A stretch of DNA of 64,000 bases from assembly GCA_977016875.1 (NCBI GenBank), contig CDRNST010000148.1, forward strand, positions 3,844,001 through 3,908,000, read 5' to 3'. Below, piece after piece: positions 31,786 to 42,910 of this stretch; the stretch's first letter is position 1; the number at the start of each line of letters is the position of its first letter. Position numbers and translations under genes: made by a program. The notes beneath the pieces were generated by a model. It was not told where the DNA came from. It saw only the letters and a list, made by a program, of their open reading frames with translations, and did no database searches. The DNA comes from Pavona decussata. Lineage: Eukaryota.

Positions 31786-33354
31786 GTGAGTATAAAAAAG
31801 AGGAGATTAAACAGTTAAGTTGTACAATTCGAGTAGTTCTTATCGCCAAAATGCAATGGTGCCAGTGAATCATGCAAGACGGCCGGGTAAAGGTCAACCT
31901 CGTTAGGAAATTTAAAAACAGGCCGTACTGTTATACATGTAACATATGCATCCCACGGAAAGTAAGACGGAACTCTGCTTGCAAGCATAAAACGTTTAAC
32001 TTTTATTGACATTTTTTAGAACCTATGGTGGTAATTTGAAAAATCTCTGATTTTTTTGCAAGCTGACTGAACGAAAATTTTCTGAAGCTAGGTAGGATAA
32101 TGTCCAGACGATGAACATTTTGAACTGCAACAAAAATATTATCATAGTACGTCTGTCTGAAGGCTTCATAGGAAAAAAAAAAAAATTAAACCAGTTATTG
32201 ACCTTTGTCCTGGGCAAGCAAATCGCCTCCTCTGAACTGAGCAAATGCGCACGCGACGGAATTAAGTTCTCAAATCATTAATAATTCATAAGAAAAAATG
32301 GAAATCACTAATTATCTTTAACTATGTTAAACGTTTGCTTTGATTTTCTCCAATAATTATGGATGGCTTGAGAAGCTAGTCAACTACTCGAAAGAGTGTT
32401 TCATTCGATTTCCAAACACCTTGAGGCTCGTATGTTTCTCCGGCTTCTCGGTGTTTGGAAATAGGATGGAGCACTCGTACTGCTTTTTATATATTACTTG
32501 AAGGTCAGCATTTGAAATATGGCTGTTTAGTTCTTGCTGTTTGCTGGAGTTTAAAAGCAACTGTCTAAGTCTAAGGACTGAATTTTTTAAAGATACTTAT
32601 ATAATTTCCTTTGCAATTAATAATGAGAAAAAAATTCCAACTTTCAATAACATCTCAAGCCAGAGTATTTTTTTCTGTCAAAAGACAGGAACTGAATACG
32701 TTTTGGCCTGTTTGACGGAGAGGCGATCCTGTGGACAAAATTTTGTTATTTTTCCTCTCAGAAAACAAAAACACACCGTGTATGAGTTTTTAACCCAGGA
32801 AGAGGTTTTCCGTAGTGGCTGCAGCTTAATTTTCGTTAAAATTATAAAATTTTAGTGTCCAGCTTTCAAATCAGTATAATTATTTGTTGACAAGAACATT
32901 ATATTCTGCCGACAGTTTTTTGCGGAAATTTGTATTTTTTTTTGTCATATGATTTAAGCTGATAAAATATCACGTGACAAAACGTCTCGAATGTGTCGTT
33001 CAAAACAAAAACGTCCAACACCACTTGACAAAGATTCCGTGAGGGAATCGAAAGCTCGTGCTTGAACATAAATTTTCGATCCTGAAAAAGAAACCTTTTT
33101 GTTGACATGATATGATAAGATCAAGAAACATTTTTTCTCTCTAACATATGCATATTAATTGTAAATTCAGCGAATTGCTATTGTTTAACCCAGTTTTGAG
33201 GTTAGACAGGTCATTGATGCGCGCGAAATTTCCATTGATAACTGAAACAAAAAGCGCGCGAAAATGAAACGAAGTTAATTGACACCTTTTTAACGCTGTC
33301 AAACGTGCAACCAATCAGCATTCAGATAAACATTTAAACAACCAATAACAATCG

Positions 33355-33374
33355 GGGCATGCTTGGACAAGTTC
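33355..33374. promoter_or_regulatory. Perfect p53-family response element in the putative MDM promoter
   Basis: GGGCATGCTT GGACAAGTTC equals RRRCWWGYYY twice with no spacer. CCAAT boxes (~33311, ~33342) and an ETS-like TTCCGG (~33398) flank it, and a probable 5'UTR exon lies at 33643-33700 (TAG|...|GTGAGT). Confidence 0.75.
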
Positions 33375-35207
33375 ATGTACTCTGTTAAGCCTGTCATTTC
33401 CGGTTTGATCCACATAGCTTCCGTTGCGAGGAAGAAAATTGAGGTTTATACCTAAGCGTGTACTGGTTTTAAAACAAAAATTGGAAAGCACTGACATTTA
33501 GGACGCAAAACATTTGTTGAACTCTTCTATGTGAACTTAGTTTAGCGATCTGTTATGGTTTTGTTTAGTCTACGTCAGATTTTTGCCAAGAAATCCGTCG
33601 AATAAAAAACGGAGATTAAGATAATACGTAGATTCTCCTTAGGTCTTTCTCAGGATCACAGCTTCGGGAACAAGTTTGTGCTGAAAGCAAGAAAATCCAT
33701 GTGAGTTGTGCGGACCGGGTGAAGGACAGGAGAAGTGAGGGTTATGGACGGTGGATTGGTGGAGAAGAAGGCTTGGTAGGCGACTAAACTTATAACTACT
33801 TTGTATTGCTGTTAATTTTTCGTCGGGTTAAAAAATGTTGTTTCATCAAGGGTTCCTGAGTGAGCGAGCTTTCAAATTTCTCTTGAATGGCCGAAGTGTG
33901 TTTATGGAAGCTTAATTGGAGCAAAATTACTATAACTCTCCTGTATATGTAACTTTTCCTTTTCCATCCCAACCTGTTTTGCTCGGGCAAATTTTTTATG
34001 TTCGTTGAATCTTTGAGTACGAAAAATGTGTTGGTTTAACGAACAAGGGTATTTTGTTTTTCAATTTTATCGCACAGTTAACTAATCTCGTTCTTGCTGC
34101 AAACTTCTTTCCGAAATTGCACATTAGAAAGCCATATTGCCATCAAATTTGCTGTAGGATTGACTAATCCCATTCCCAACGCTTCATATCGGCAAGACTT
34201 TTAATTCACGTATTTTACGAGTGCTAAGATTTACAACGATCAAACTAGTTTTGACGTTGAGTATTTTTTCGAACACGAATGGACACATCAATGCAAACAC
34301 GCACGTAGATTAGCTTTGCCTCTGAAAATGTTGGGAAAACTACATGAGCTAGAGAAAAAGTTTTCTATCCTGAAAATTACTCTCAAAAAATTCACGGGTC
34401 AGAGAATATGACCACGTTGAATTCAATTTTTTCCCCATTCAAACCACACAGCGAGTAATATGACGTTATGAAGAAATATGTTTTCTTGTTGGTGGAGTTT
34501 CATTTTCGTTATGATTTTGACAACCTTGTTGGATTTTTGTGACATTGTAGAGCTTGTTAAATGAGACTGTATTTTACTCATCGCGCCACGCGCTTGAAAT
34601 AAATCCCAGACATTATAGCTGAAGCTGTCGATTTGGCCGCCATTAGCTGAAGTGTTAAAGGTCGCTTTCCCACGCTAGACTATAACCCCTATCTAATTTC
34701 GGCGCATTCTTGATTCCTCTTCCTTCTCAGTTACATCAGATTACAAAGCATTTTGTTTACAATTTTTAAAAGGGCTGAACTTCGACAAGGTTAAGCTCTT
34801 TTCTTTTCGATTTTCGTGAAGTGGCTGCAATCCTTCAAATGGATCTTCGCTAATGTTATTGGAAGACAATCTTGGTGACAGTCTCTCTTATTCTCTGTTT
34901 TTACTTTGTTACTTGTCGATCTTGGTGTTCTTGGCAATGAAACACAGAAAAATTCAGTATATTGAGTTCCAAAGTTGTAGTATTCATTTTTTGCTGAAAA
35001 TGAACGCTTTGTAACAATACCCCAGGCCTCGTGTTATTAGCATTTTGCAAATACTCTTGTTTACCATGTCGACCTCAGTGAAAACCCGATGCGTTCGATT
35101 TTCTGCAAAAAGAAAAGCGCCAAGTTGGATTTGGAAGTGAAATACAAGAAAGAAATGACGATCGGGCATTGCATTCTTCCGAGATTACTGCGAAGTATTG
35201 ATATTTG

Positions 35208-35240
35208 TAGCAAGTCGAGGCCTGTCTTATAAACATGTCT
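35208..35240. promoter_or_regulatory. Second p53 half-site cluster upstream of the MDM coding exons
   Basis: TAGCAAGTCG (8/10), AGGCCTGTCT (9/10), 3-nt spacer, AAACATGTCT (10/10). Confidence 0.5.
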
Positions 35241-38200
35241 AAACAAAGAGCTTGCAGCCCTGCAGATATTTCGCTGTTTAGAAAAAACAGTCATTAGTGC
35301 CTGGTCTGGTTCGTTGCCCGCGAGTGATCAAAGGTGCTGGCAAAAGATTGCTTCTGAGGGATGTCAGTGTAAGCTTAAATGTATAAGTTAAACCTACAAA
35401 TTTTGTTAACCAACTAACATATAATGCTTATAGCCACTTTTACATTGTGGGCTCTCTTCAAGGTTTTTCCCTTGTGTTCAAAAATTTTTGGACCCATTCA
35501 TTTGCATAATATATTGATCAACAAAAATGAGAAAAGTGGCCAAATCTTTTGAATAACTGTACGAATGTTGACTGTGCTCTCCCTAATTTTCGTCATAGCT
35601 GAAATGCCCACAAGATTATCTTTACAAACATGTTTCCTTGGCTTTTTCTACCACAGAACTTTAATCAATATAGCCCTATCAACAAACACATTTTTGTGTT
35701 CCCTTAAGACGGATGTTTTTTGAACTTGAATGGGCTTGCAAACCCCTGTGGGTTCACTAGGGTGGAGCAGAATTCAACAATCCTATGTCATTCTTTCAAC
35801 AATACTAGCTTAACTGTGATACTTCATGTGAGGCATAACTGGAATTACACTGAAATTAATTAGATGGCTGATCTGTTGTAATCTCAGTTGGACTTCATAA
35901 AATGTTCTCTTTAAATACCCGCCTCACACACCTATATTATTTTTATGTGGTTTTCTTCCAAGATCCAACAATATTTTTTTGAGAAAAAGGCCATGAAGTT
36001 TAATGCCCTTCAATGGCAAAGTGTTGCTGCTGCTGTTAGCTTTCATTTTTAAATAGTTACCCTTCTGCCATGCATCCAAAAACTTTGTGCTGAAGGTGGT
36101 TTGGATTTTAGCCAAAGAGGCAAACCTTGTACGACCTTGTATAGCTCAATAATGAAAAGAAATATTAACAGGATGTATTTAAAGGCGGGTATTTACTGCA
36201 TGGCCAAGAAGCTTTGGTTAATTTCTTGAGGATTGCCACACTTAAGGATTTTACCAATCCACAGACTTATAATTAATGTTAAAACCACTTTTTAAGCTTA
36301 ATTACAGGGTTTTAATGATCAGATCAGAAGACTGAAAAAAAATCATTTCAAGGAAACAAAATCTTGAGAGAGGGATTCAGGCATGATTGCAGATGACATC
36401 AAATGTAGTAAGATCAATAAGTGACTTTTACATCTTCCATGATCCATAAGTAAACAGACCCTGAGAAAAACAGATTGTATTTTTGTTTTCTACAACAACT
36501 GAAACATCAATTTGATATCACAGCATTACAAAAAAAATTAAGATAAATTGGAGTAGTATTGTAATCTCAAAGGAACATTGTTACTTGAACTTTGCTTTGT
36601 TGTAGTCAAAATTAAATAAATTTTTGATAAGATGCCTTTGTTCAAATATAAAATTTCTCTTAGAGCATCAAGAAGAAAATTAATTTAAAGTGATTTCTCT
36701 GGGGAAGAAGAAACCTAATCAGATTTTAGCATATTTTTTTGGTACAAATCTTGAAAAGTTGAAAACATTGGCCCATGTTTTAAAGTTGCAGTCCATTTTT
36801 CACTCTGGTTATCTTCAGCCAAGGATATTTACTTTGAGTTTCTGTTCACTAGTAGAGTACATGTAATTATAATTAATTGTTGAAATAAAACTGGATCATT
36901 ATTTGAACTCTTCCCTTGATACAAATTTGTTCTATGGTTGTTCAAAGTGGTGCAAAAGTTATGTGACATTTTACACCCTTTGATATTAGTCCAATATCTT
37001 TAAGAGGTTTAGAATCTAACCTGGAATCCATTTGGAAAGCTGTCTGGAGCAAAGATCACTGCATCTGATCATCAGCTTTCATAGATTTTTCCTGTGTAAA
37101 CTGTCACCTCAAGTGTGTCATTTGGGATGATTTTTTAGCTAAGTTCTTGTTGAAGTTTTCTAATTAATCTGTAAAGTAGCTCATAAAGTTCTGATGCACT
37201 TTGCCATTCAGACAGTGAACTCTGTACCCAGTTTTTGCCATCTTTGTCCTTGCATATGACTGTGTCATAGAACACCATTCGACAACAACCAATCAAAACA
37301 AATAATTTAACATAGTTATTAATAACGTAAGGCAAACTCCAATGTCCATAGAACACTTTTTCATGTGATGTTACCTCTTGAATGCTTAAGATGTCTATAG
37401 CCAAAGTTTAGTCTTCACTATAATGAGTAGATTAGGTCTGCAGCAAAGAAATTTCTTCTACTTAATCTAACAGAAACAAACCACTGTGGCTGGCTATCAC
37501 CATAATAATTATTATTTCTTTACATATTCTAAGCGTGTTTTCCATTGAAAGGCCTTGGCATTCATTTCGCTAAGTTCGCAATGCTTTGAGTATCTTGAAC
37601 ATGGTAATGTTTTCCAGGGTAGCTGCCTCCATTTTTTCTTTACTAGCTTTGGGCCTGGTTTAAATAGTTCATCGATATCATGATCATTCTATTCATGCCT
37701 AACTAGCACAAAGGGTAATTTTTATCGCTGAGTGCTTTCCGCTCCTCTCTGTAGGCCACCATGCCACTTACAGGTTACCTCCCAACTCTTCCAGGATAAA
37801 TCTTACCTCTCTCCTTCTCAACAATTCTACCCCAAGTTAAAGTAGCAACCTGGAAAATTCTCTTTCTGGGTGAAAGCAAAAATTAAACAGAAAAATCAAA
37901 ATGTAATTTTACTTTTCTTATTACAGTGAAGTACTGATAGCTCCACAGTGTGACAGTTCCGACAATGAGCAAGGTATGTACAAAACAAAATAAAGTAGGT
38001 GCTCTCTAAAGTGTATGCCCTCATGACCAAGAAATACAAAGTATTGGCACAGCGCGAGAAACAAATCCACAGCTCCTTTTTATTTTCCACCTACTCCAAA
38101 AGTTAGTGACAATCCTGCAGTTTCTAACCTGCAGTTCAGGTTTATCATTTTTTATGCTTTTTTTGGACGAAAGCCAAGCATAAGCAGAAGGGGAAAATAA

Positions 38201-39232
38201 TGCCTGTATGCACATCATTGTTTTAGTCTTTCTGCTCCCAGACATACCTTGAAATAAAACACCAGTCAGTGGTTGACAAAGGTAGCACAAAACCTGTTTA
38301 GCAGACCCCATATAATTTTGACATTATACAGGATTGTAAATATCTGGATATGATTTTTTGTAACTTAACTTTTTAGAAAATGTAAAGCACTGAGGGACTT
38401 GGTGATAAGCACTACACAGTGTATAAGCTTTGTTTATTGTTAGTATTTTATTATGTTGCAAAAGTCCACTTGGTATGTAGACTGCAAGACGTTATTGTTT
38501 TATGTATTTCTGAGTGAAAACGATGTCTATCTGTAAACAAAAGCATAGAAGAAGCTTTTAAAAGTGGAAAATACATTGTAACTGCAGTTTCTGTTCTGTA
38601 CTGCTTATGTCCCAAACTGTTTTCAGACTGCAATAGCAAGAGTGGGAGTTAACTCAATATCAATGAAAGGATTAATGTGACCAAAACACAAATATTCCTG
38701 ACAAGAAACATACCATCCTGCAACAATAACAAATGGCTGGGTCGAGCATAGCAAATTTTGCAAGATCATGACAGGGTGTAAAACTATTGGGTGCTTAAAG
38801 TAAACAGAGCCACACAAAAATGTATCTTTACTACACCTTTCAATAACATCCGGACTCTGAAGTTCAAGATTCAACCAACCAATACACTTTTCACTGCTGT
38901 CAATCACTGCAGTGGACCTCTAAGAAAACAAAAACATTTGGCTCACCAGATCAAAAGGTCATGTTAGTGTGCTGTGGTTGGCAAATTTCGAACCACTTCC
39001 TCGACTTCTGTACATTGTATTTCTTGCAGTCAGGTGGTTGTCGCCATAATTAAGATTGACAGCAGTAAAACACGCAAATCGTTAGTTGGGTTTACTTTGA
39101 CCTTGAGAGTCTATTTGTTATTGAAAGGCATAGGAATGCTGCAAATGAGATAAACAGGGAAGTTGAAAAAACAAAAGGTCAAGTTCAAAATTCCCTGACA
39201 AAAGGTTTTTGTTATCCTTCAATTTTTTTCAG

Positions 39233-39327
39233 GAAGTTTTTGTAACACACCTAAAAAGCCATTGAGGAAACGGAAAAGAGAATCTTTGACAGGTATGTTT
39301 TGGCAACATTTATTTATGTATTTTCAG

Positions 39328-39383
<56 letters not shown>

Positions 39384-42300
39384 GAAAAAAAGCTACAGTA
39401 TATGGACAATTTGTAAAACAGTTGAAGATGCCATCTTAAATAAATCACCCTTAAATCACCCTTAAATAACGTTTTTATTCGATACAGCTTCCTCTCCCCA
39501 GCTCAGATGCCTCTACCATAACTGTATTGTTGTATTGTGCTCTTGGGCAGGATTACAACTTTGGGAATATCATAGTTTGCTTGATTTGGGTGTGTGACCT
39601 TTCCACGTTAAACTGTTTTAAGTGACGTTCCCTTGGTCATTTGATCAGCAAACGTTTTTGGTTTCTTTTATTAAAGATATATATCCTATTTGTTTATAGA
39701 AGTAATTTAAGTGTGAACATAAAAAGTAAGTGGCATTTTTTTATCTAGATGCTGCAAAAGGAAGCTACACTCCCCCTCGACAAATTGGTTGGGGTATGGG
39801 GTTCTCTTCAGTCATATCAGAAAGTGAGAGTGAAAACTCTGAACCTTACAGTGCAGTGTATTTGGTCAAAGGGTACGAATCAGCCGTGACAGCCATCATA
39901 ACAGACTCTGAAGATGACCTGTTTTTTCTCAATGGTGAGTTTGCCAGTATAGTTAATTATTTGGTGCATGTTTTACTGGAATCCCTCCCCACCCCCCTCT
40001 CGTTTCTCTCCCTTTAGCAGACAGGGGAACTTTACCCTCAATACTCACAAATCCTGTTTTGCTGCCTGCATGGACTACTGGAAAGCATTTCAAGAGGATC
40101 TCCATAAGATACGCCAAGTTGTACATCATGCAAACTATTTTAGCGGAAAAGAATGAGTCATTTTAATTTTCCTAAACCTTGTTCATGTGCTTGACTGGCT
40201 GGTTAGTTTTCTCATCCAGTTTATCATCAACTGGTTGGTTGGCTAATTGATTGTTTGTTTGAGTTCTTACTGACTGGTTAAGGGTAACTGACTGGCTGAC
40301 CGACCAACTGACTCACTGACTCACTGACTGACCAACCATCTGACTGACTGACTTACTGATTGACCGACTGACTGACTGATCAGTTCACTATTTTGATTGG
40401 AAAAAATAGTTGGTTACAAGTCTTTCTGTCCATTGATTATTTGGTTAAATGTTTAGTTGATTGTTGGTTTGACTGTCTAATCAAATGACTTAAATTACAC
40501 ACAGAAACTGTGGAATTTGAGCCACCTGGTTCTGATAGTGAAGAAGAGGAGGACCAGAATGAAGAAGAATCAGAAGATGAAGGTATGGGGCTGAAGATTG
40601 GCAAGGATTCCCCACAACAATTTGAAGACATGAGAAATTTTGTACTACAAATGAGTGAATGTACCTTTAATTAAGTATCAAGCTGAAAGACTAGTTACTG
40701 CAGAAGAGCACTAAATGGGGGAAACTATTTAAAACAAAATGGCAAGATAAAAAGGTTGCATGTTGTACAGTGTATGCTCCGTGATTGCCTTGCTTGAGTT
40801 ATCATGACATTTTGTCTTTCCTTAGTTCCAAAGATAGATAGATGAGATAGAAAGTTAAATGTTTAGCTTCTTTGAAGGTAGAAGTGTCACCAAGTTGAGC
40901 TATACTCAGGGTAATAACGAGCATCCTGCGGCTGTAATTTCTTTTAAGTTTTTATTCTTTTTGTGTTTTGGTCTTGCATGTGGCATGTATGTATGTAATT
41001 ATGACAACAAATTTTATGGGTATAAATAAAAGAAAAGAAACTTTGCCAATTAAAAAAGTGGGCCCAAACTGACCGGAGGCAGACACGTTGATATTGATGC
41101 GATGATGTACAGTGAAGGTGTCCCCATGTTTGACTTCAGTGATAAGTATTTTTGCTCAGTGTGAGAAATCTTCAAGATAAATATTCAGTATAATGTATTG
41201 ATTGCTTTGATGTCATTTTTCTGTCTTGTTTTAGTTGTTGTAAGCAGCTCAGAAGATGAGGATCCCGGCGCAGAGGGTGGAGATGAATATGAAGAAGACC
41301 AGGAGTCTGATTCAGATATTGACGAAGAGGATCTGTGGTCCTGCCCACAATGTAACCTCAAAAACCACCCAATGTCACGGCAGTGTGCTCGTTGCTGGGT
41401 TGAAAGACATGAGTGGCTTCCTCACTTGAAAAGGTGCGTATATATTGTTTAATTTTTATATGAAACCTTGAGTCATTGAAAAGTTTCAAGGCTGTTGCCT
41501 ATCAGGAGCCCAGTAGTCTGGGGCACCTAAGACATTTCTCTGGGCACCTAAATTGTTTTGCAGTAGCGTCTAGCATTTCATAGGCTGGGCTCAGCCTTTG
41601 GGTTTCTGGGCTCCTTGAAGTTTTACTTATTTTGGCAACAGCCCTGGTTCTTCTAACCTTGGAATCGGGCTATGAGATCCTAAATTACAAATTTTAAAAT
41701 CAAAATGTAAGCTATATTAAGCATTGCTTTGTTGCTCTCTTGTTTATTATCAGGGGCACCCAACAGATCGTTTAGGTAAATTATCTGTTCGTAAGGCCCT
41801 TAATCCCCTACAACTTTCTAAAGGGAATTTTCACCTCGAACTTTCTTAAAAGGGGAATTTTAAGGCCTAGTGTTTTTGGATTGATAAAAATGTCGTTTCG
41901 GGTGCCGAAAAAAGGTCAGCTAAGATTTTCGGAAGGGAAATAAGACCTAAGGTTTTCGGGAAATGGACAAAGATGCCCTAGTAATTTCGAAAAGACTCAA
42001 GCTCCCCTAGAACTACCGAACAGATAAAAATATTTTAGCGCGGCCTGAAATGAACCTACAGAGCTTTAAAGGCACTCCAGATAGACTAAAACTGCGTTTT
42101 AAAGGATTTGAGAGAAAAGTTTCGTTAGGTGCCCCTGTATTATGCCACCATACAAGGTGGTTTTAACTTTGGAGATGTGGATCAAGTCCTAAATTGTGTT
42201 CATGTGATAGAAAGCTGTTAAGCATTACTTTTCTGTGGTGCTGTTTCTTTATGCTTTACAAGGTGGTTCTAACTGTTGAGACGTGAGACCATTTAAATAA

Positions 42301-42910
42301 AAGTGTCACCCATTATGCTGTGCACCCTGATTCTAAGAAGCTTTGTAGCATTTGCACAATCATTTTTCCTGAGAAAATGAGGCCACCCTGTAGGCGTCCT
42401 GTCCATTACCACAAACATTTTTTTTTTCGCAGATTGTCTTCAGAACCAACTGTTGATCTGTCCAGAGTAACAGGAAATTCATCTGTTTTGCCATCACTTC
42501 AAAAATGTCCCTCACTTGCTGTAGCACCAACTATTGAAAATCCTTCATCATCGACATCATCATCACAATCAGTAACTCTTACTTCACAAGCTGCTTCAAA
42601 TATTATGATTGCTCCTGCATCAGCTGAAAGAGATCATCAAGAACATTTGCATCGTTCAGGACATGCATCAAGTCTGAATAACACTGTACAGAGTGTAACT
42701 ATAAGCTCTGAAAAGAAAGATCCTGAGCCTGCCTTTTCTCCAGACTTGTGTGTCATTTGCTTGACGCAACCTCGAAATGCTAGTTTGGTACATGGAAGAA
42801 CTGGCCATCAGGTTTGTTGCATTGGATGTGCAGAAAAACTGAAGGAAAACAAAAAGAAATGTCCAGTATGCCGTAAGAAAATTAAGCTCATTGTCAAAAA
42901 TTTCTTCTAA
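39233..42910 (+). CDS. MDM2: MDM2/MDM4-family RING E3 ligase (start codon not firmly located)
   Basis: Exons 39233-39292, 39749-39934, 40505-40582, 41235-41433, 42433-42910. It has a basic NLS-like KKPLRKRKR, an acidic domain, a RanBP2-type zinc finger DLWSCPQCNLKNHPMSRQCARCWVERHEWLP, and the C2H2C4 MDM RING CVICLTQPRNASLVHGRTGHQVCCIGCAEKLKENKKKCPVCRKKIKLIVKNFF*. Confidence 0.92.
39329..39383. repeat. (GAT)n microsatellite in an MDM intron
   Basis: About 17 perfect GAT units, downstream of the donor at 39293. Confidence 0.95.
41751..42137. mobile_element. hAT-like MITE
   Basis: TATTAT|CAGGGGCACCCAAC ... GTTAGGTGCCCCTG|TATTAT, apparent 6-bp target duplication. Confidence 0.7.

Follow-up and report, generated by a model that had tools for sequence, protein, structure and literature searches.

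The window analysed here, a stretch of 64 kb from the coral Pavona decussata, carries on its forward strand the coral's single full MDM orthologue. The gene is real and expressed; its seven coding exons sum to 1077 bases, or 359 codons, and are joined by canonical GT-AG sites throughout. N runs occur in the window just at 9764-10008, 16417-16930 and 17649-17805, with none inside 33420-42910, a stretch that the first-pass annotation had rightly described as gap-free. The features of the locus are listed below, the RNA evidence coming from assembled contigs of runs X1 and X2 (study P1) and X5 (study P2).

33355-33374, no strand assigned: p53-type response element, two RRRCWWGYYY decamers with no spacer, perfect, read from the sequence
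33379-33775, + strand: exon 1, with an X2 contig at 33379-33774 and the joint 33775>37927 (GT..AG) in X1 and X2
33776-37926, + strand: intron 1 (4151 bases), between exons 1 and 2
37927-37973, + strand: exon 2 (47 bases; ..EVLIAPQCDSSDNEQ..), with a splice joint at either end in X1, X2 and X5
38828-39093, no strand assigned: MITE-like dispersed repeat, about 265 bases long and with inverted ends, in intron 2 and absent from the gene product
39233-39292, + strand: exon 3 (60 bases), joined to exon 2 at 37973>39233 and with a loose contig end at 39292 that runs on into the first letters of exon 4
39331-39385, no strand assigned: (GAT)n microsatellite that reads as poly-Asp in the frame of exon 3 but lies in intron 3 and is spliced out
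39749-39934, + strand: exon 4, conserved block ..VKGYESAVTAIITDSEDDLFFLN and start of the acidic region, placed by the RNA loose-end letters, tblastn of orthologues and invariant columns in orthologue alignment A2
40505-40582, + strand: exon 5, ETVEFEPPGSDSEEEE.., acidic, placed by orthologue alignment and splice sites, aligning with the SVEFEVES segment of fish MDM2
41235-41433, + strand: exon 6, acidic DEDPGAEGGDEY block and RanBP2-type C4 zinc finger, placed by PF00641, orthologue alignment and a splice site
42433-42910, + strand: exon 7, Ser/Thr-rich linker, MDM-type RING, aromatic C-terminal tail (..IVKNFF) and stop, placed by PF13920, the PDB MDM2 RING and a splice site

The comparison with RNA contigs covers 33301-39300 in four runs, and contig assembly drops rare isoforms. 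The splices 33775>37927 and 37973>39233 (GT..AG) are seen in contigs from two studies, and the contigs run on past 39292 into letters matching 39749 onward. They reach the start of exon 4, and exons 4-7 are based on orthologue alignment together with splice sites. Exon 1 consists of a 365-base 5'UTR with three upstream ATGs, followed by the start ATG at 33744, from which the exon encodes 10 2/3 codons (MDGGLVEKKA..); an in-frame stop at 33720-33722 lies upstream of this ATG. The peptide of exon 2 agrees with the N-termini of the orthologues and is not part of a SWIB domain, the p53-binding domain of MDM proteins, while exon 3 encodes a basic, nuclear-localisation-like stretch, KKPLRKRKRE. No further exon is present in the spliced contigs between exon 1, 37927-37973 and 39233-39292. 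Intron 1 has no SWIB-like open frame and carries just low-depth unspliced contigs; frames picked out in it by eye, such as 36169-36273 and 35282-35383, are without profile support. Since the acidic and zinc-finger exons are found at one locus only, a retrocopy is not the source of the spliced contigs.

Two repeats lie within the introns. The poly-Asp open frame after 39292, earlier taken as part of the acidic domain, turns out to be the intronic (GAT)n repeat. The repeat at 38828-39093 has 672 first-look candidates in the genome, 40 of which were scored and show 79-84% identity, with inverted matches of its bases 9-48 alongside. Short high-depth RNA contigs with loose ends sit on it.

The acidic, zinc-finger and RING modules and the aromatic tail are intact, as the first-pass annotation had read them, and this is borne out by Pfam, PDB and BLASTP. 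The RING matches PF13920 (E 1.6e-12, ORF 42320-42910), and among solved structures its exon finds MDM2 best (E 4.5e-18), MDM4 next and no other families, with the alignment to PDB MDM2 reaching the final residues (..KNFF vs ..LTYF). The zinc finger, which follows the acidic domain, precedes the RING and aligns with the finger of MDM2, matches PF00641 (E 9.6e-5, ORF 41198-41452) at 22 bits, below the 27-bit Pfam cut-off. Full-length orthologues (P0052 and others) were used in place of the spliced product, and the exons were searched singly. In BLASTP, P0052 aligns with salmonid MDM2 over the acidic region, zinc finger and RING as one piece (E 3e-25), starting at ..DSEDDLFF..VEFE.., and the same blocks are present in exons 4-6 of the window. 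The acidic block, which aligns with the central acidic domain of vertebrate MDM2, is the most conserved part outside the RING among orthologues. The non-cnidarian matches are MDM2/MDM4 of echinoderms, hemichordates, brachiopods, molluscs, amphioxus and fish. An MDM profile search finds acidic, zinc-finger and RING exons together at this sole locus of the genome, which has other MDM-type RING genes at C126, C45 and C5.

The SWIB domain was searched for with a local profile of 53 MDM-type SWIB domains, run on the six-frame translation of the window. It gives zero matches between 33.4 and 39.2 kb and none in the gene region; its top score over both strands of the whole window, 11.8 bits (E 0.035), falls outside the gene at 13996-14109 (+), in other sequence 20 kb upstream, and is taken as chance. 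In a leave-one-out control, pieces of 30-40 aa from true SWIBs are mostly recovered at E<0.01. The SWIB core exon of the MDM locus of the octocoral Xenia reaches 62.3 bits with the same profile, and a 26-aa Xenia SWIB exon by itself 6.9 bits. The earlier claim that no SWIB-like exon lies between the promoter and 39233 holds in both the RNA splices and the profile, and the spliced RNA contigs of 33301-39300 contain no SWIB-encoding exon. The by-eye exon reading of the first-pass annotation thus stands as to the absence of SWIB, but probably overlooked the coding exon at 37927-37973. The domain is missing from the gene itself, and is not removed by splicing.

The search extends to the 602 Mb genome in six frames, where the SWIBs of Mytilus and Xenia and an MDM-SWIB alignment of 46 sequences give nothing significant; these whole-genome searches scored candidates from a loose first look, with no positive-control genome. 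A match of the MDM-SWIB alignment at C56 (E 2.3) is read as chance. The Pfam SWIB model finds SMARCD-like and UAF30-like genes only in the whole genome and none of MDM type: the match at C84 is SMARCD/BAF60-like, that at C148:2.396 Mb is UAF30-like, and those at C175 and C273 are weak. A word-index search with the Mytilus SWIB matched Mytilus proteins only. The hexacoral orthologues, including that of Nematostella, show no SWIB match even at E<=10, and the same test is positive on the MDMs of Mytilus, Lingula and Asterias.

The short N-terminus of the 359-codon product is probably disordered. An AlphaFold2 model of the orthologue P0052 has no confident N-terminal fold, and is a poor model (mean pLDDT 40.9, from a 9-sequence alignment). 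The proposal that the coral N-terminus is a leftover of the last SWIB helix is supported neither by the SWIB profile nor by a coral N-terminus profile compared with post-SWIB regions; the basic stretch alone aligns with the post-SWIB regions of bilaterian MDMs.

Stony-coral orthologues (359-368 aa) and the longer Nematostella protein (484 aa) have the same short N-terminus as the window gene, and it is shared by all the hexacoral full-length proteins, many of which derive from transcript assemblies. Like the RefSeq 'Mdm2-like' proteins of Montipora capricornis and Oculina patagonica and the 'Mdm4' of Nematostella, the Pavona protein has the acidic region, zinc finger and RING and no p53-binding domain. 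The N-terminus common to these cnidarian MDMs reads MDGALVE.KAC.., ..CDSSDNEQG and ..RKRKRE, and last-exon identity to them is 58-92%.

The closest relative outside the hexacorals is the E3 ubiquitin-protein ligase Mdm2-like of the octocoral Xenia sp. (XP_046851656.1; P0248, locus L036). Contrary to the window gene, it has a clear MDM-type SWIB in exons 2-4 (90.6 bits), whose Atlas model has a TM of 0.81 to chordate Mdm2. The blocks ..SDDLFFL.., ..EYEP.. and ..GGDE.. are present in both genes, along with the zinc finger and the tailed RING, and the last three introns fall at the same positions, so that the Xenia exon ends ..DDLFFLY| and ..LER| correspond to ..DDLFFLN| and ..LKR| in the window. 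The shared block is preceded by about 205 residues in Xenia and by 46 in the window gene. Because Xenia keeps the SWIB and the intron positions are shared, the loss looks hexacoral-specific rather than pan-cnidarian. From these sequences, in which one species stands for the octocoral side, it most likely happened in the hexacoral stem lineage.

A seven-exon, 359-residue MDM without SWIB, the domain having been lost in evolution, is very probably the correct description of this gene. It is highly improbable that a divergent SWIB exon was overlooked or that another promoter yields a rare isoform that escaped notice: even though other animals have the domain split over short exons, the Xenia exon of 26 aa scores so low alone and RNA contigs lose rare variants, the Xenia core exon stands at 62 bits against 11.8 for the best score in the 64 kb window on both strands, the four runs hold no joint from intron 1 into exon 2, and every hexacoral full-length protein opens with the same short N-terminus. 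Still harder to credit is a shift of the p53-binding role to a separate, stand-alone MDM-type SWIB gene partnering the ligase. The diversification of the MDM-type RING family (C126, C45, C5) would suit it, yet genome-wide searches return only SMARCD/UAF30-type or chance-level matches (best E 2.3), and the 10 kb around the C126 paralogue are without SWIB signal. The least credible account is that the gene is no MDM orthologue at all and represents either some unrelated RING-type ligase or a pseudogene undergoing decay, as the zinc finger under the Pfam cut-off (22 vs 27 bits) and the absence of one defining MDM domain might suggest. The salmonid MDM2 alignment (E 3e-25), PDB matches solely to MDM2/MDM4 and introns shared with the four-domain MDM of Xenia speak against an unrelated ligase, and a pseudogene is contradicted by the open frame, the canonical splice sites, transcription and splicing, and strong conservation among corals.

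The lack of SWIB in cnidarian MDMs has already been published: the proteins of Nematostella vectensis and Hydra vulgaris, as well as of Acropora digitifera, are without a p53-binding domain, and cnidarian p53-family proteins without a transactivation domain (TAD) (Aberg et al. 2017, PMC5543598). The absence from MDM is also stated by Mihalic et al. 2023 (PMC10303687). The Pavona gene fits the 2017 description, with the same architecture and the species alone differing. What is added here is the transcript-level exon structure, the genome-wide SWIB negative and the contrast between octocoral and hexacorals. In the literature searched, no functional data were found for any cnidarian MDM.

With no MDM-type SWIB in mRNA, locus, genome or hexacoral orthologues, helix binding in a SWIB pocket is impossible for this protein, and the earlier claim that it cannot bind a transactivation domain in the classical way is upheld. 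How it acts instead is far less certain than its architecture. Coral MDM would be a RING E3 ligase of the nucleus, dimerising by way of its RING and tail, and would be unable to clamp a transactivation-domain helix. Action via the acidic domain or on other substrates is compatible with the sequence. The protein may still restrain p53-family proteins, a prospect somewhat short of even; restraint would then pass through acidic-domain or zinc-finger contacts like the second p53 site of vertebrate MDM2, and otherwise the ligase would have substrates of another kind, for example ribosomal-protein or chromatin partners. The putative p53-type site at 33355-33374 lies 5 bases ahead of the point where the RNA contig begins (33379), and is compatible with induction of the gene by p53-family proteins.

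On the side of the possible partners, matches of the Pfam P53_TAD model in the genome are chance-level only and far from its p53-like genes. A search for FxxxWxxL-type motifs upstream of these genes gave FLETWPAVV as the sole recurrent candidate, upstream of the copies at C7 and C129; with no splice sites and a proline after the Trp, it is rejected as a TAD exon. The motif lies within a stretch of 31 bases that recurs without change at four paralogous loci and has no Rfam match.

With the architecture unchanged, the p53-family link may have gone altogether, leaving the promoter site incidental or the target of another factor and the ligase with other substrates only. This account is possible, if doubtful. 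Both interaction modules have been reported missing in cnidarians (PMC5543598; for the vertebrate TAD motif in nvp63, Pankow and Bamberger 2007, PMC1964547), the P53_TAD model has no match close to the p53-like genes, and no measurable TAD/SWIB affinity was found even in some animals in which both have been retained (Mihalic 2023, PMC10303687). A perfect 20-base consensus 5 bases ahead of the RNA contig start sits poorly with such an account, as does the conservation of the acidic block, the p53 core contact in vertebrates, above any other non-RING part. The fuller proposal, that hexacorals lost the SWIB after the octocoral split and kept a p53-driven MDM loop via acidic or zinc-finger contact with the core domain of p53-family proteins, is tentative and rather unlikely as a whole. 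If it were true, coral MDM would be a natural separation-of-function form, and the second MDM-p53 contact would be old and strong enough alone.

The p53-MDM2 clamp is among the best-studied interactions in cancer biology and a drug target. A coral MDM with an intact ligase end and no p53 pocket provides transcript and genome confirmation of a claim made in 2017 from protein models, and nutlin-type reasoning is not transferable to corals and anemones. The SWIB kept in the octocoral and absent in hexacorals dates the loss. This anthozoan contrast offers a paired system for the role of MDM without SWIB, and for asking whether the N-terminus of the p53 family changed in step.

With vertebrate MDM2 and MDM4 the coral protein has in common the central acidic segment (..SVEFEVES.. 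in fish MDM2), the RanBP2-type zinc finger and a RING of C2H2C4 type, ending in the aromatic tail that serves RING dimer activity. Unlike them, it lacks the SWIB, hence any nutlin-type pocket, and is far shorter (359 aa). The acidic domain of vertebrate MDM2 contacts the p53 core as a second p53 site. In mammalian MDM2 a p53 site drives the P2 promoter; in vertebrates this site is at an internal promoter, whereas the coral p53-type site stands at the only promoter seen. N-terminally truncated forms of mammalian MDM2, such as p76MDM2, keep the acidic region, zinc finger and RING and do not bind the p53 TAD, and they are minor isoforms beside the full-length protein. In the coral, by comparison, the truncated form is the only product that the gene can make.

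The MDM gene of the window (contig C148, positions 3844001-3908000, of the 602 Mb Pavona decussata genome; all close protein relatives support a stony-coral placement) encodes an orthologue without SWIB, the N-terminal p53-binding domain of MDM2. The gene is spliced, open in frame and conserved, its acidic, zinc-finger and RING parts are intact, and 33420-42910 holds no assembly gaps. RNA contigs from four runs were aligned over 33301-39300, where a 1799-base contig of run X2 covers the segments 33379-33774, 37926-37973 and 39234-39292. Both joints were found again in X1, of the same study, and the second joint in X5, of a separate study, all with GT..AG borders. In these three runs the contigs run on past 39292 with a loose end that reads as the window does from 39749 on. 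Exons 4-7 were set by orthologue alignment and splice sites, not by aligned reads. An in-frame stop precedes the start codon (33744) by 24 bases, and the coding lengths total 1077 bases (359 codons), with all junctions canonical.

Coding exons of the MDM gene and a repeat in intron 3
33744-33775, + strand: coding exon 1 (RNA contigs)
37927-37973, + strand: coding exon 2 (RNA contigs)
39233-39292, + strand: coding exon 3 (RNA contigs)
39749-39934, + strand: coding exon 4 (orthologue alignment and splice sites; loose-end letters of RNA contigs match from 39749 onward)
40505-40582, + strand: coding exon 5 (orthologue alignment and splice sites)
41235-41433, + strand: coding exon 6 (orthologue alignment and splice sites)
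42433-42910, + strand: coding exon 7, stop included (orthologue alignment and splice sites)
39331-39385: (GAT)n microsatellite, whose poly-Asp reading in the frame of exon 3 mimics an acidic domain

The poly-Asp frame after 39292 was rejected as the acidic domain, being an intronic repeat that is spliced out. The 365-base 5'UTR (33379-33743) carries three upstream ATGs, two of them in ATG-stop pairs and the third opening a 16-codon uORF, a likeness to mammalian MDM2 transcripts, which have uORF-bearing leaders. A MITE-like repeat in intron 2 (38828-39093), about 265 bases long and with inverted ends of about 40 bases, explains the very deep short RNA contigs in this intron; the genome holds hundreds of copies of it (672 candidates at first look).

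The downstream modules are present as the first-pass annotation described them. The RING lies in the ORF 42320-42910 (PF13920, E 1.6e-12) and a RanBP2-type zinc finger in the ORF 41198-41452 (PF00641, E 9.6e-5, under the curated cut-off). Among solved structures, MDM2 RINGs (best E 4.5e-18) and then MDM4 RINGs are the only matches to the last exon, the alignment reaching the final residues (..IVKNFF in the coral vs ..IVLTYF). P0052, a full-length coral orthologue standing in for the spliced product, aligns to salmonid MDM2 in a single alignment that starts in the acidic ..DSEDDLFF..VEFE.. block and takes in zinc finger and RING (E 3e-25).

The reported lack of a SWIB exon upstream of 39233 holds in RNA joints, window and genome. 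Intron 1 shows low-depth, unspliced contigs only, on both strands; no spliced contig in the four runs joins 35200-35400 to exon 2, although contigs may miss a rare isoform. With the Pfam SWIB model, the six-frame genome gave one SMARCD-like and one UAF30-like gene, no match in the window and nothing MDM-like. A large representative search with a coral orthologue as query retrieved MDMs from many phyla, of which 53 MDM-type SWIB domains were built into a profile. On the six-frame window its best match (11.8 bits, E 0.035) lies at 13996-14109, 20 kb upstream, with none in 33.4-39.2 kb. In leave-one-out controls over an equal search space, the profile recovered most 30-40 aa fragments at E<0.01, even those taken from the most divergent SWIBs, and the core SWIB exon of the octocoral Xenia sp., outside the training set, scored 62.3 bits. 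Genome-wide, a 46-sequence SWIB alignment reached E 2.3 at best, and the Mytilus and Xenia domains had no matches. An MDM profile placed acidic and zinc-finger exons at this locus only, so there is neither a second full MDM gene nor a retrocopy behind the spliced contigs.

Full-length MDMs of other stony corals (RefSeq Mdm2-like proteins of Montipora capricornis and Oculina patagonica, plus several transcript-assembly clusters) measure 359-368 aa and share the short N-terminus, as does the 484-aa Nematostella 'Mdm4'. None of these gave a SWIB signal even at E<=10; the same search found SWIB in Mytilus, Lingula and Asterias MDMs. Except for a basic RKRKR stretch, nothing in the coral N-terminus detectably resembles SWIB or post-SWIB linkers, and residues 1-133 lack a confident fold in the AlphaFold2 model of P0052, which is poor overall. 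A SWIB-less coral MDM is confirmed, and the phenomenon is already known: Aberg et al. (PMC5543598) described the p53-binding domain as missing from cnidarian MDM, and Mihalic et al. 2023 (PMC10303687) repeated this, so the finding is already published.

Contig C126 carries another MDM-type RING on its minus strand (2982265-2982759; L033:4266-4760), sharing the tail (..KIKLVVKNFL). The stretch before this RING is very acidic and rich in Trp and Phe, and neither a zinc finger nor SWIB lies close by. Its protein may pair with the window's MDM through the RING. C45 and C5 bear weaker matches of the MDM RING type.

The genome carries several p53-like DNA-binding-domain loci, at least four, and further partial copies on C150 and C265.

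p53-family DNA-binding-domain (DBD) loci and a shared 31-base stretch
C78:218780-220106: DBD locus
C7:3052131-3054669: DBD locus
C31:676539-677934: DBD locus
C129:44769-47012: DBD locus, in-frame stops
C7:3059998-3060028; C129:52544-52574; C150:969969-969999; C265:12452-12482: 31-base stretch

The Pfam transactivation-domain (TAD) model gave chance-level matches only, away from these loci. A recurrent TAD-motif candidate upstream of the DBD exons (FLETWPAVV) was rejected for want of splice sites. The 31-base stretch, which reads FLETWPAVV in one frame, is identical in four paralogous p53-like loci whose flanks are just 80-89% alike, and has no Rfam match. For the N-termini of the family the reading leans on the literature: Pankow and Bamberger 2007 (PMC1964547) note that the TAD motif of vertebrates is missing from nvp63.

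The window's MDM would act as a nuclear RING E3, dimerising through its RING and tail, and would be unable to bind a TAD helix. A perfect p53-type consensus site lies at 33355-33374, 5 bases 5' of the RNA contig's first base. Vertebrate MDM2 makes a second p53 contact in its acidic region and, by analogy, a SWIB-independent link to p53-family proteins might tentatively be kept through the acidic region, which is intact here. That the protein's function no longer involves p53 appears only slightly less likely than such a link. The earlier interpretation, of an MDM induced by p53-family proteins and unable to bind a TAD classically, is partly supported: the observed absence of SWIB stands, and the functional side is compatible with the sequence.

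The cluster of the best non-hexacoral match includes P0248 (XP_046851656.1), a 501-aa Mdm2-like protein of Xenia sp. with a strong MDM-type SWIB (90.6 bits with the MDM-SWIB profile; Pfam SWIB on record), whose Atlas model has a TM of 0.81 to chordate Mdm2. At least one cnidarian therefore retains a four-domain MDM, in conflict with the published statement on cnidarian MDM. A literature search for an octocoral SWIB-bearing MDM found no paper mentioning SWIB retention, which makes a modest new point, resting on one octocoral. With one octocoral sampled, the simplest reading of the sequences would place the loss on the hexacoral stem, with a separate loss in the Hydra lineage if the published Hydra result holds.

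L036:10001-14695 (GCA_021976095.1, 9.6 Mb scaffold): Xenia sp. MDM2-like gene, SWIB in exons 2-4

Exons of this gene end at ..DDLFFLY and ..LER, precisely the positions at which exons 4 and 6 of the window's gene end. SWIB is kept in the Xenia protein and absent from the coral MDM; the downstream intron positions are common to both.
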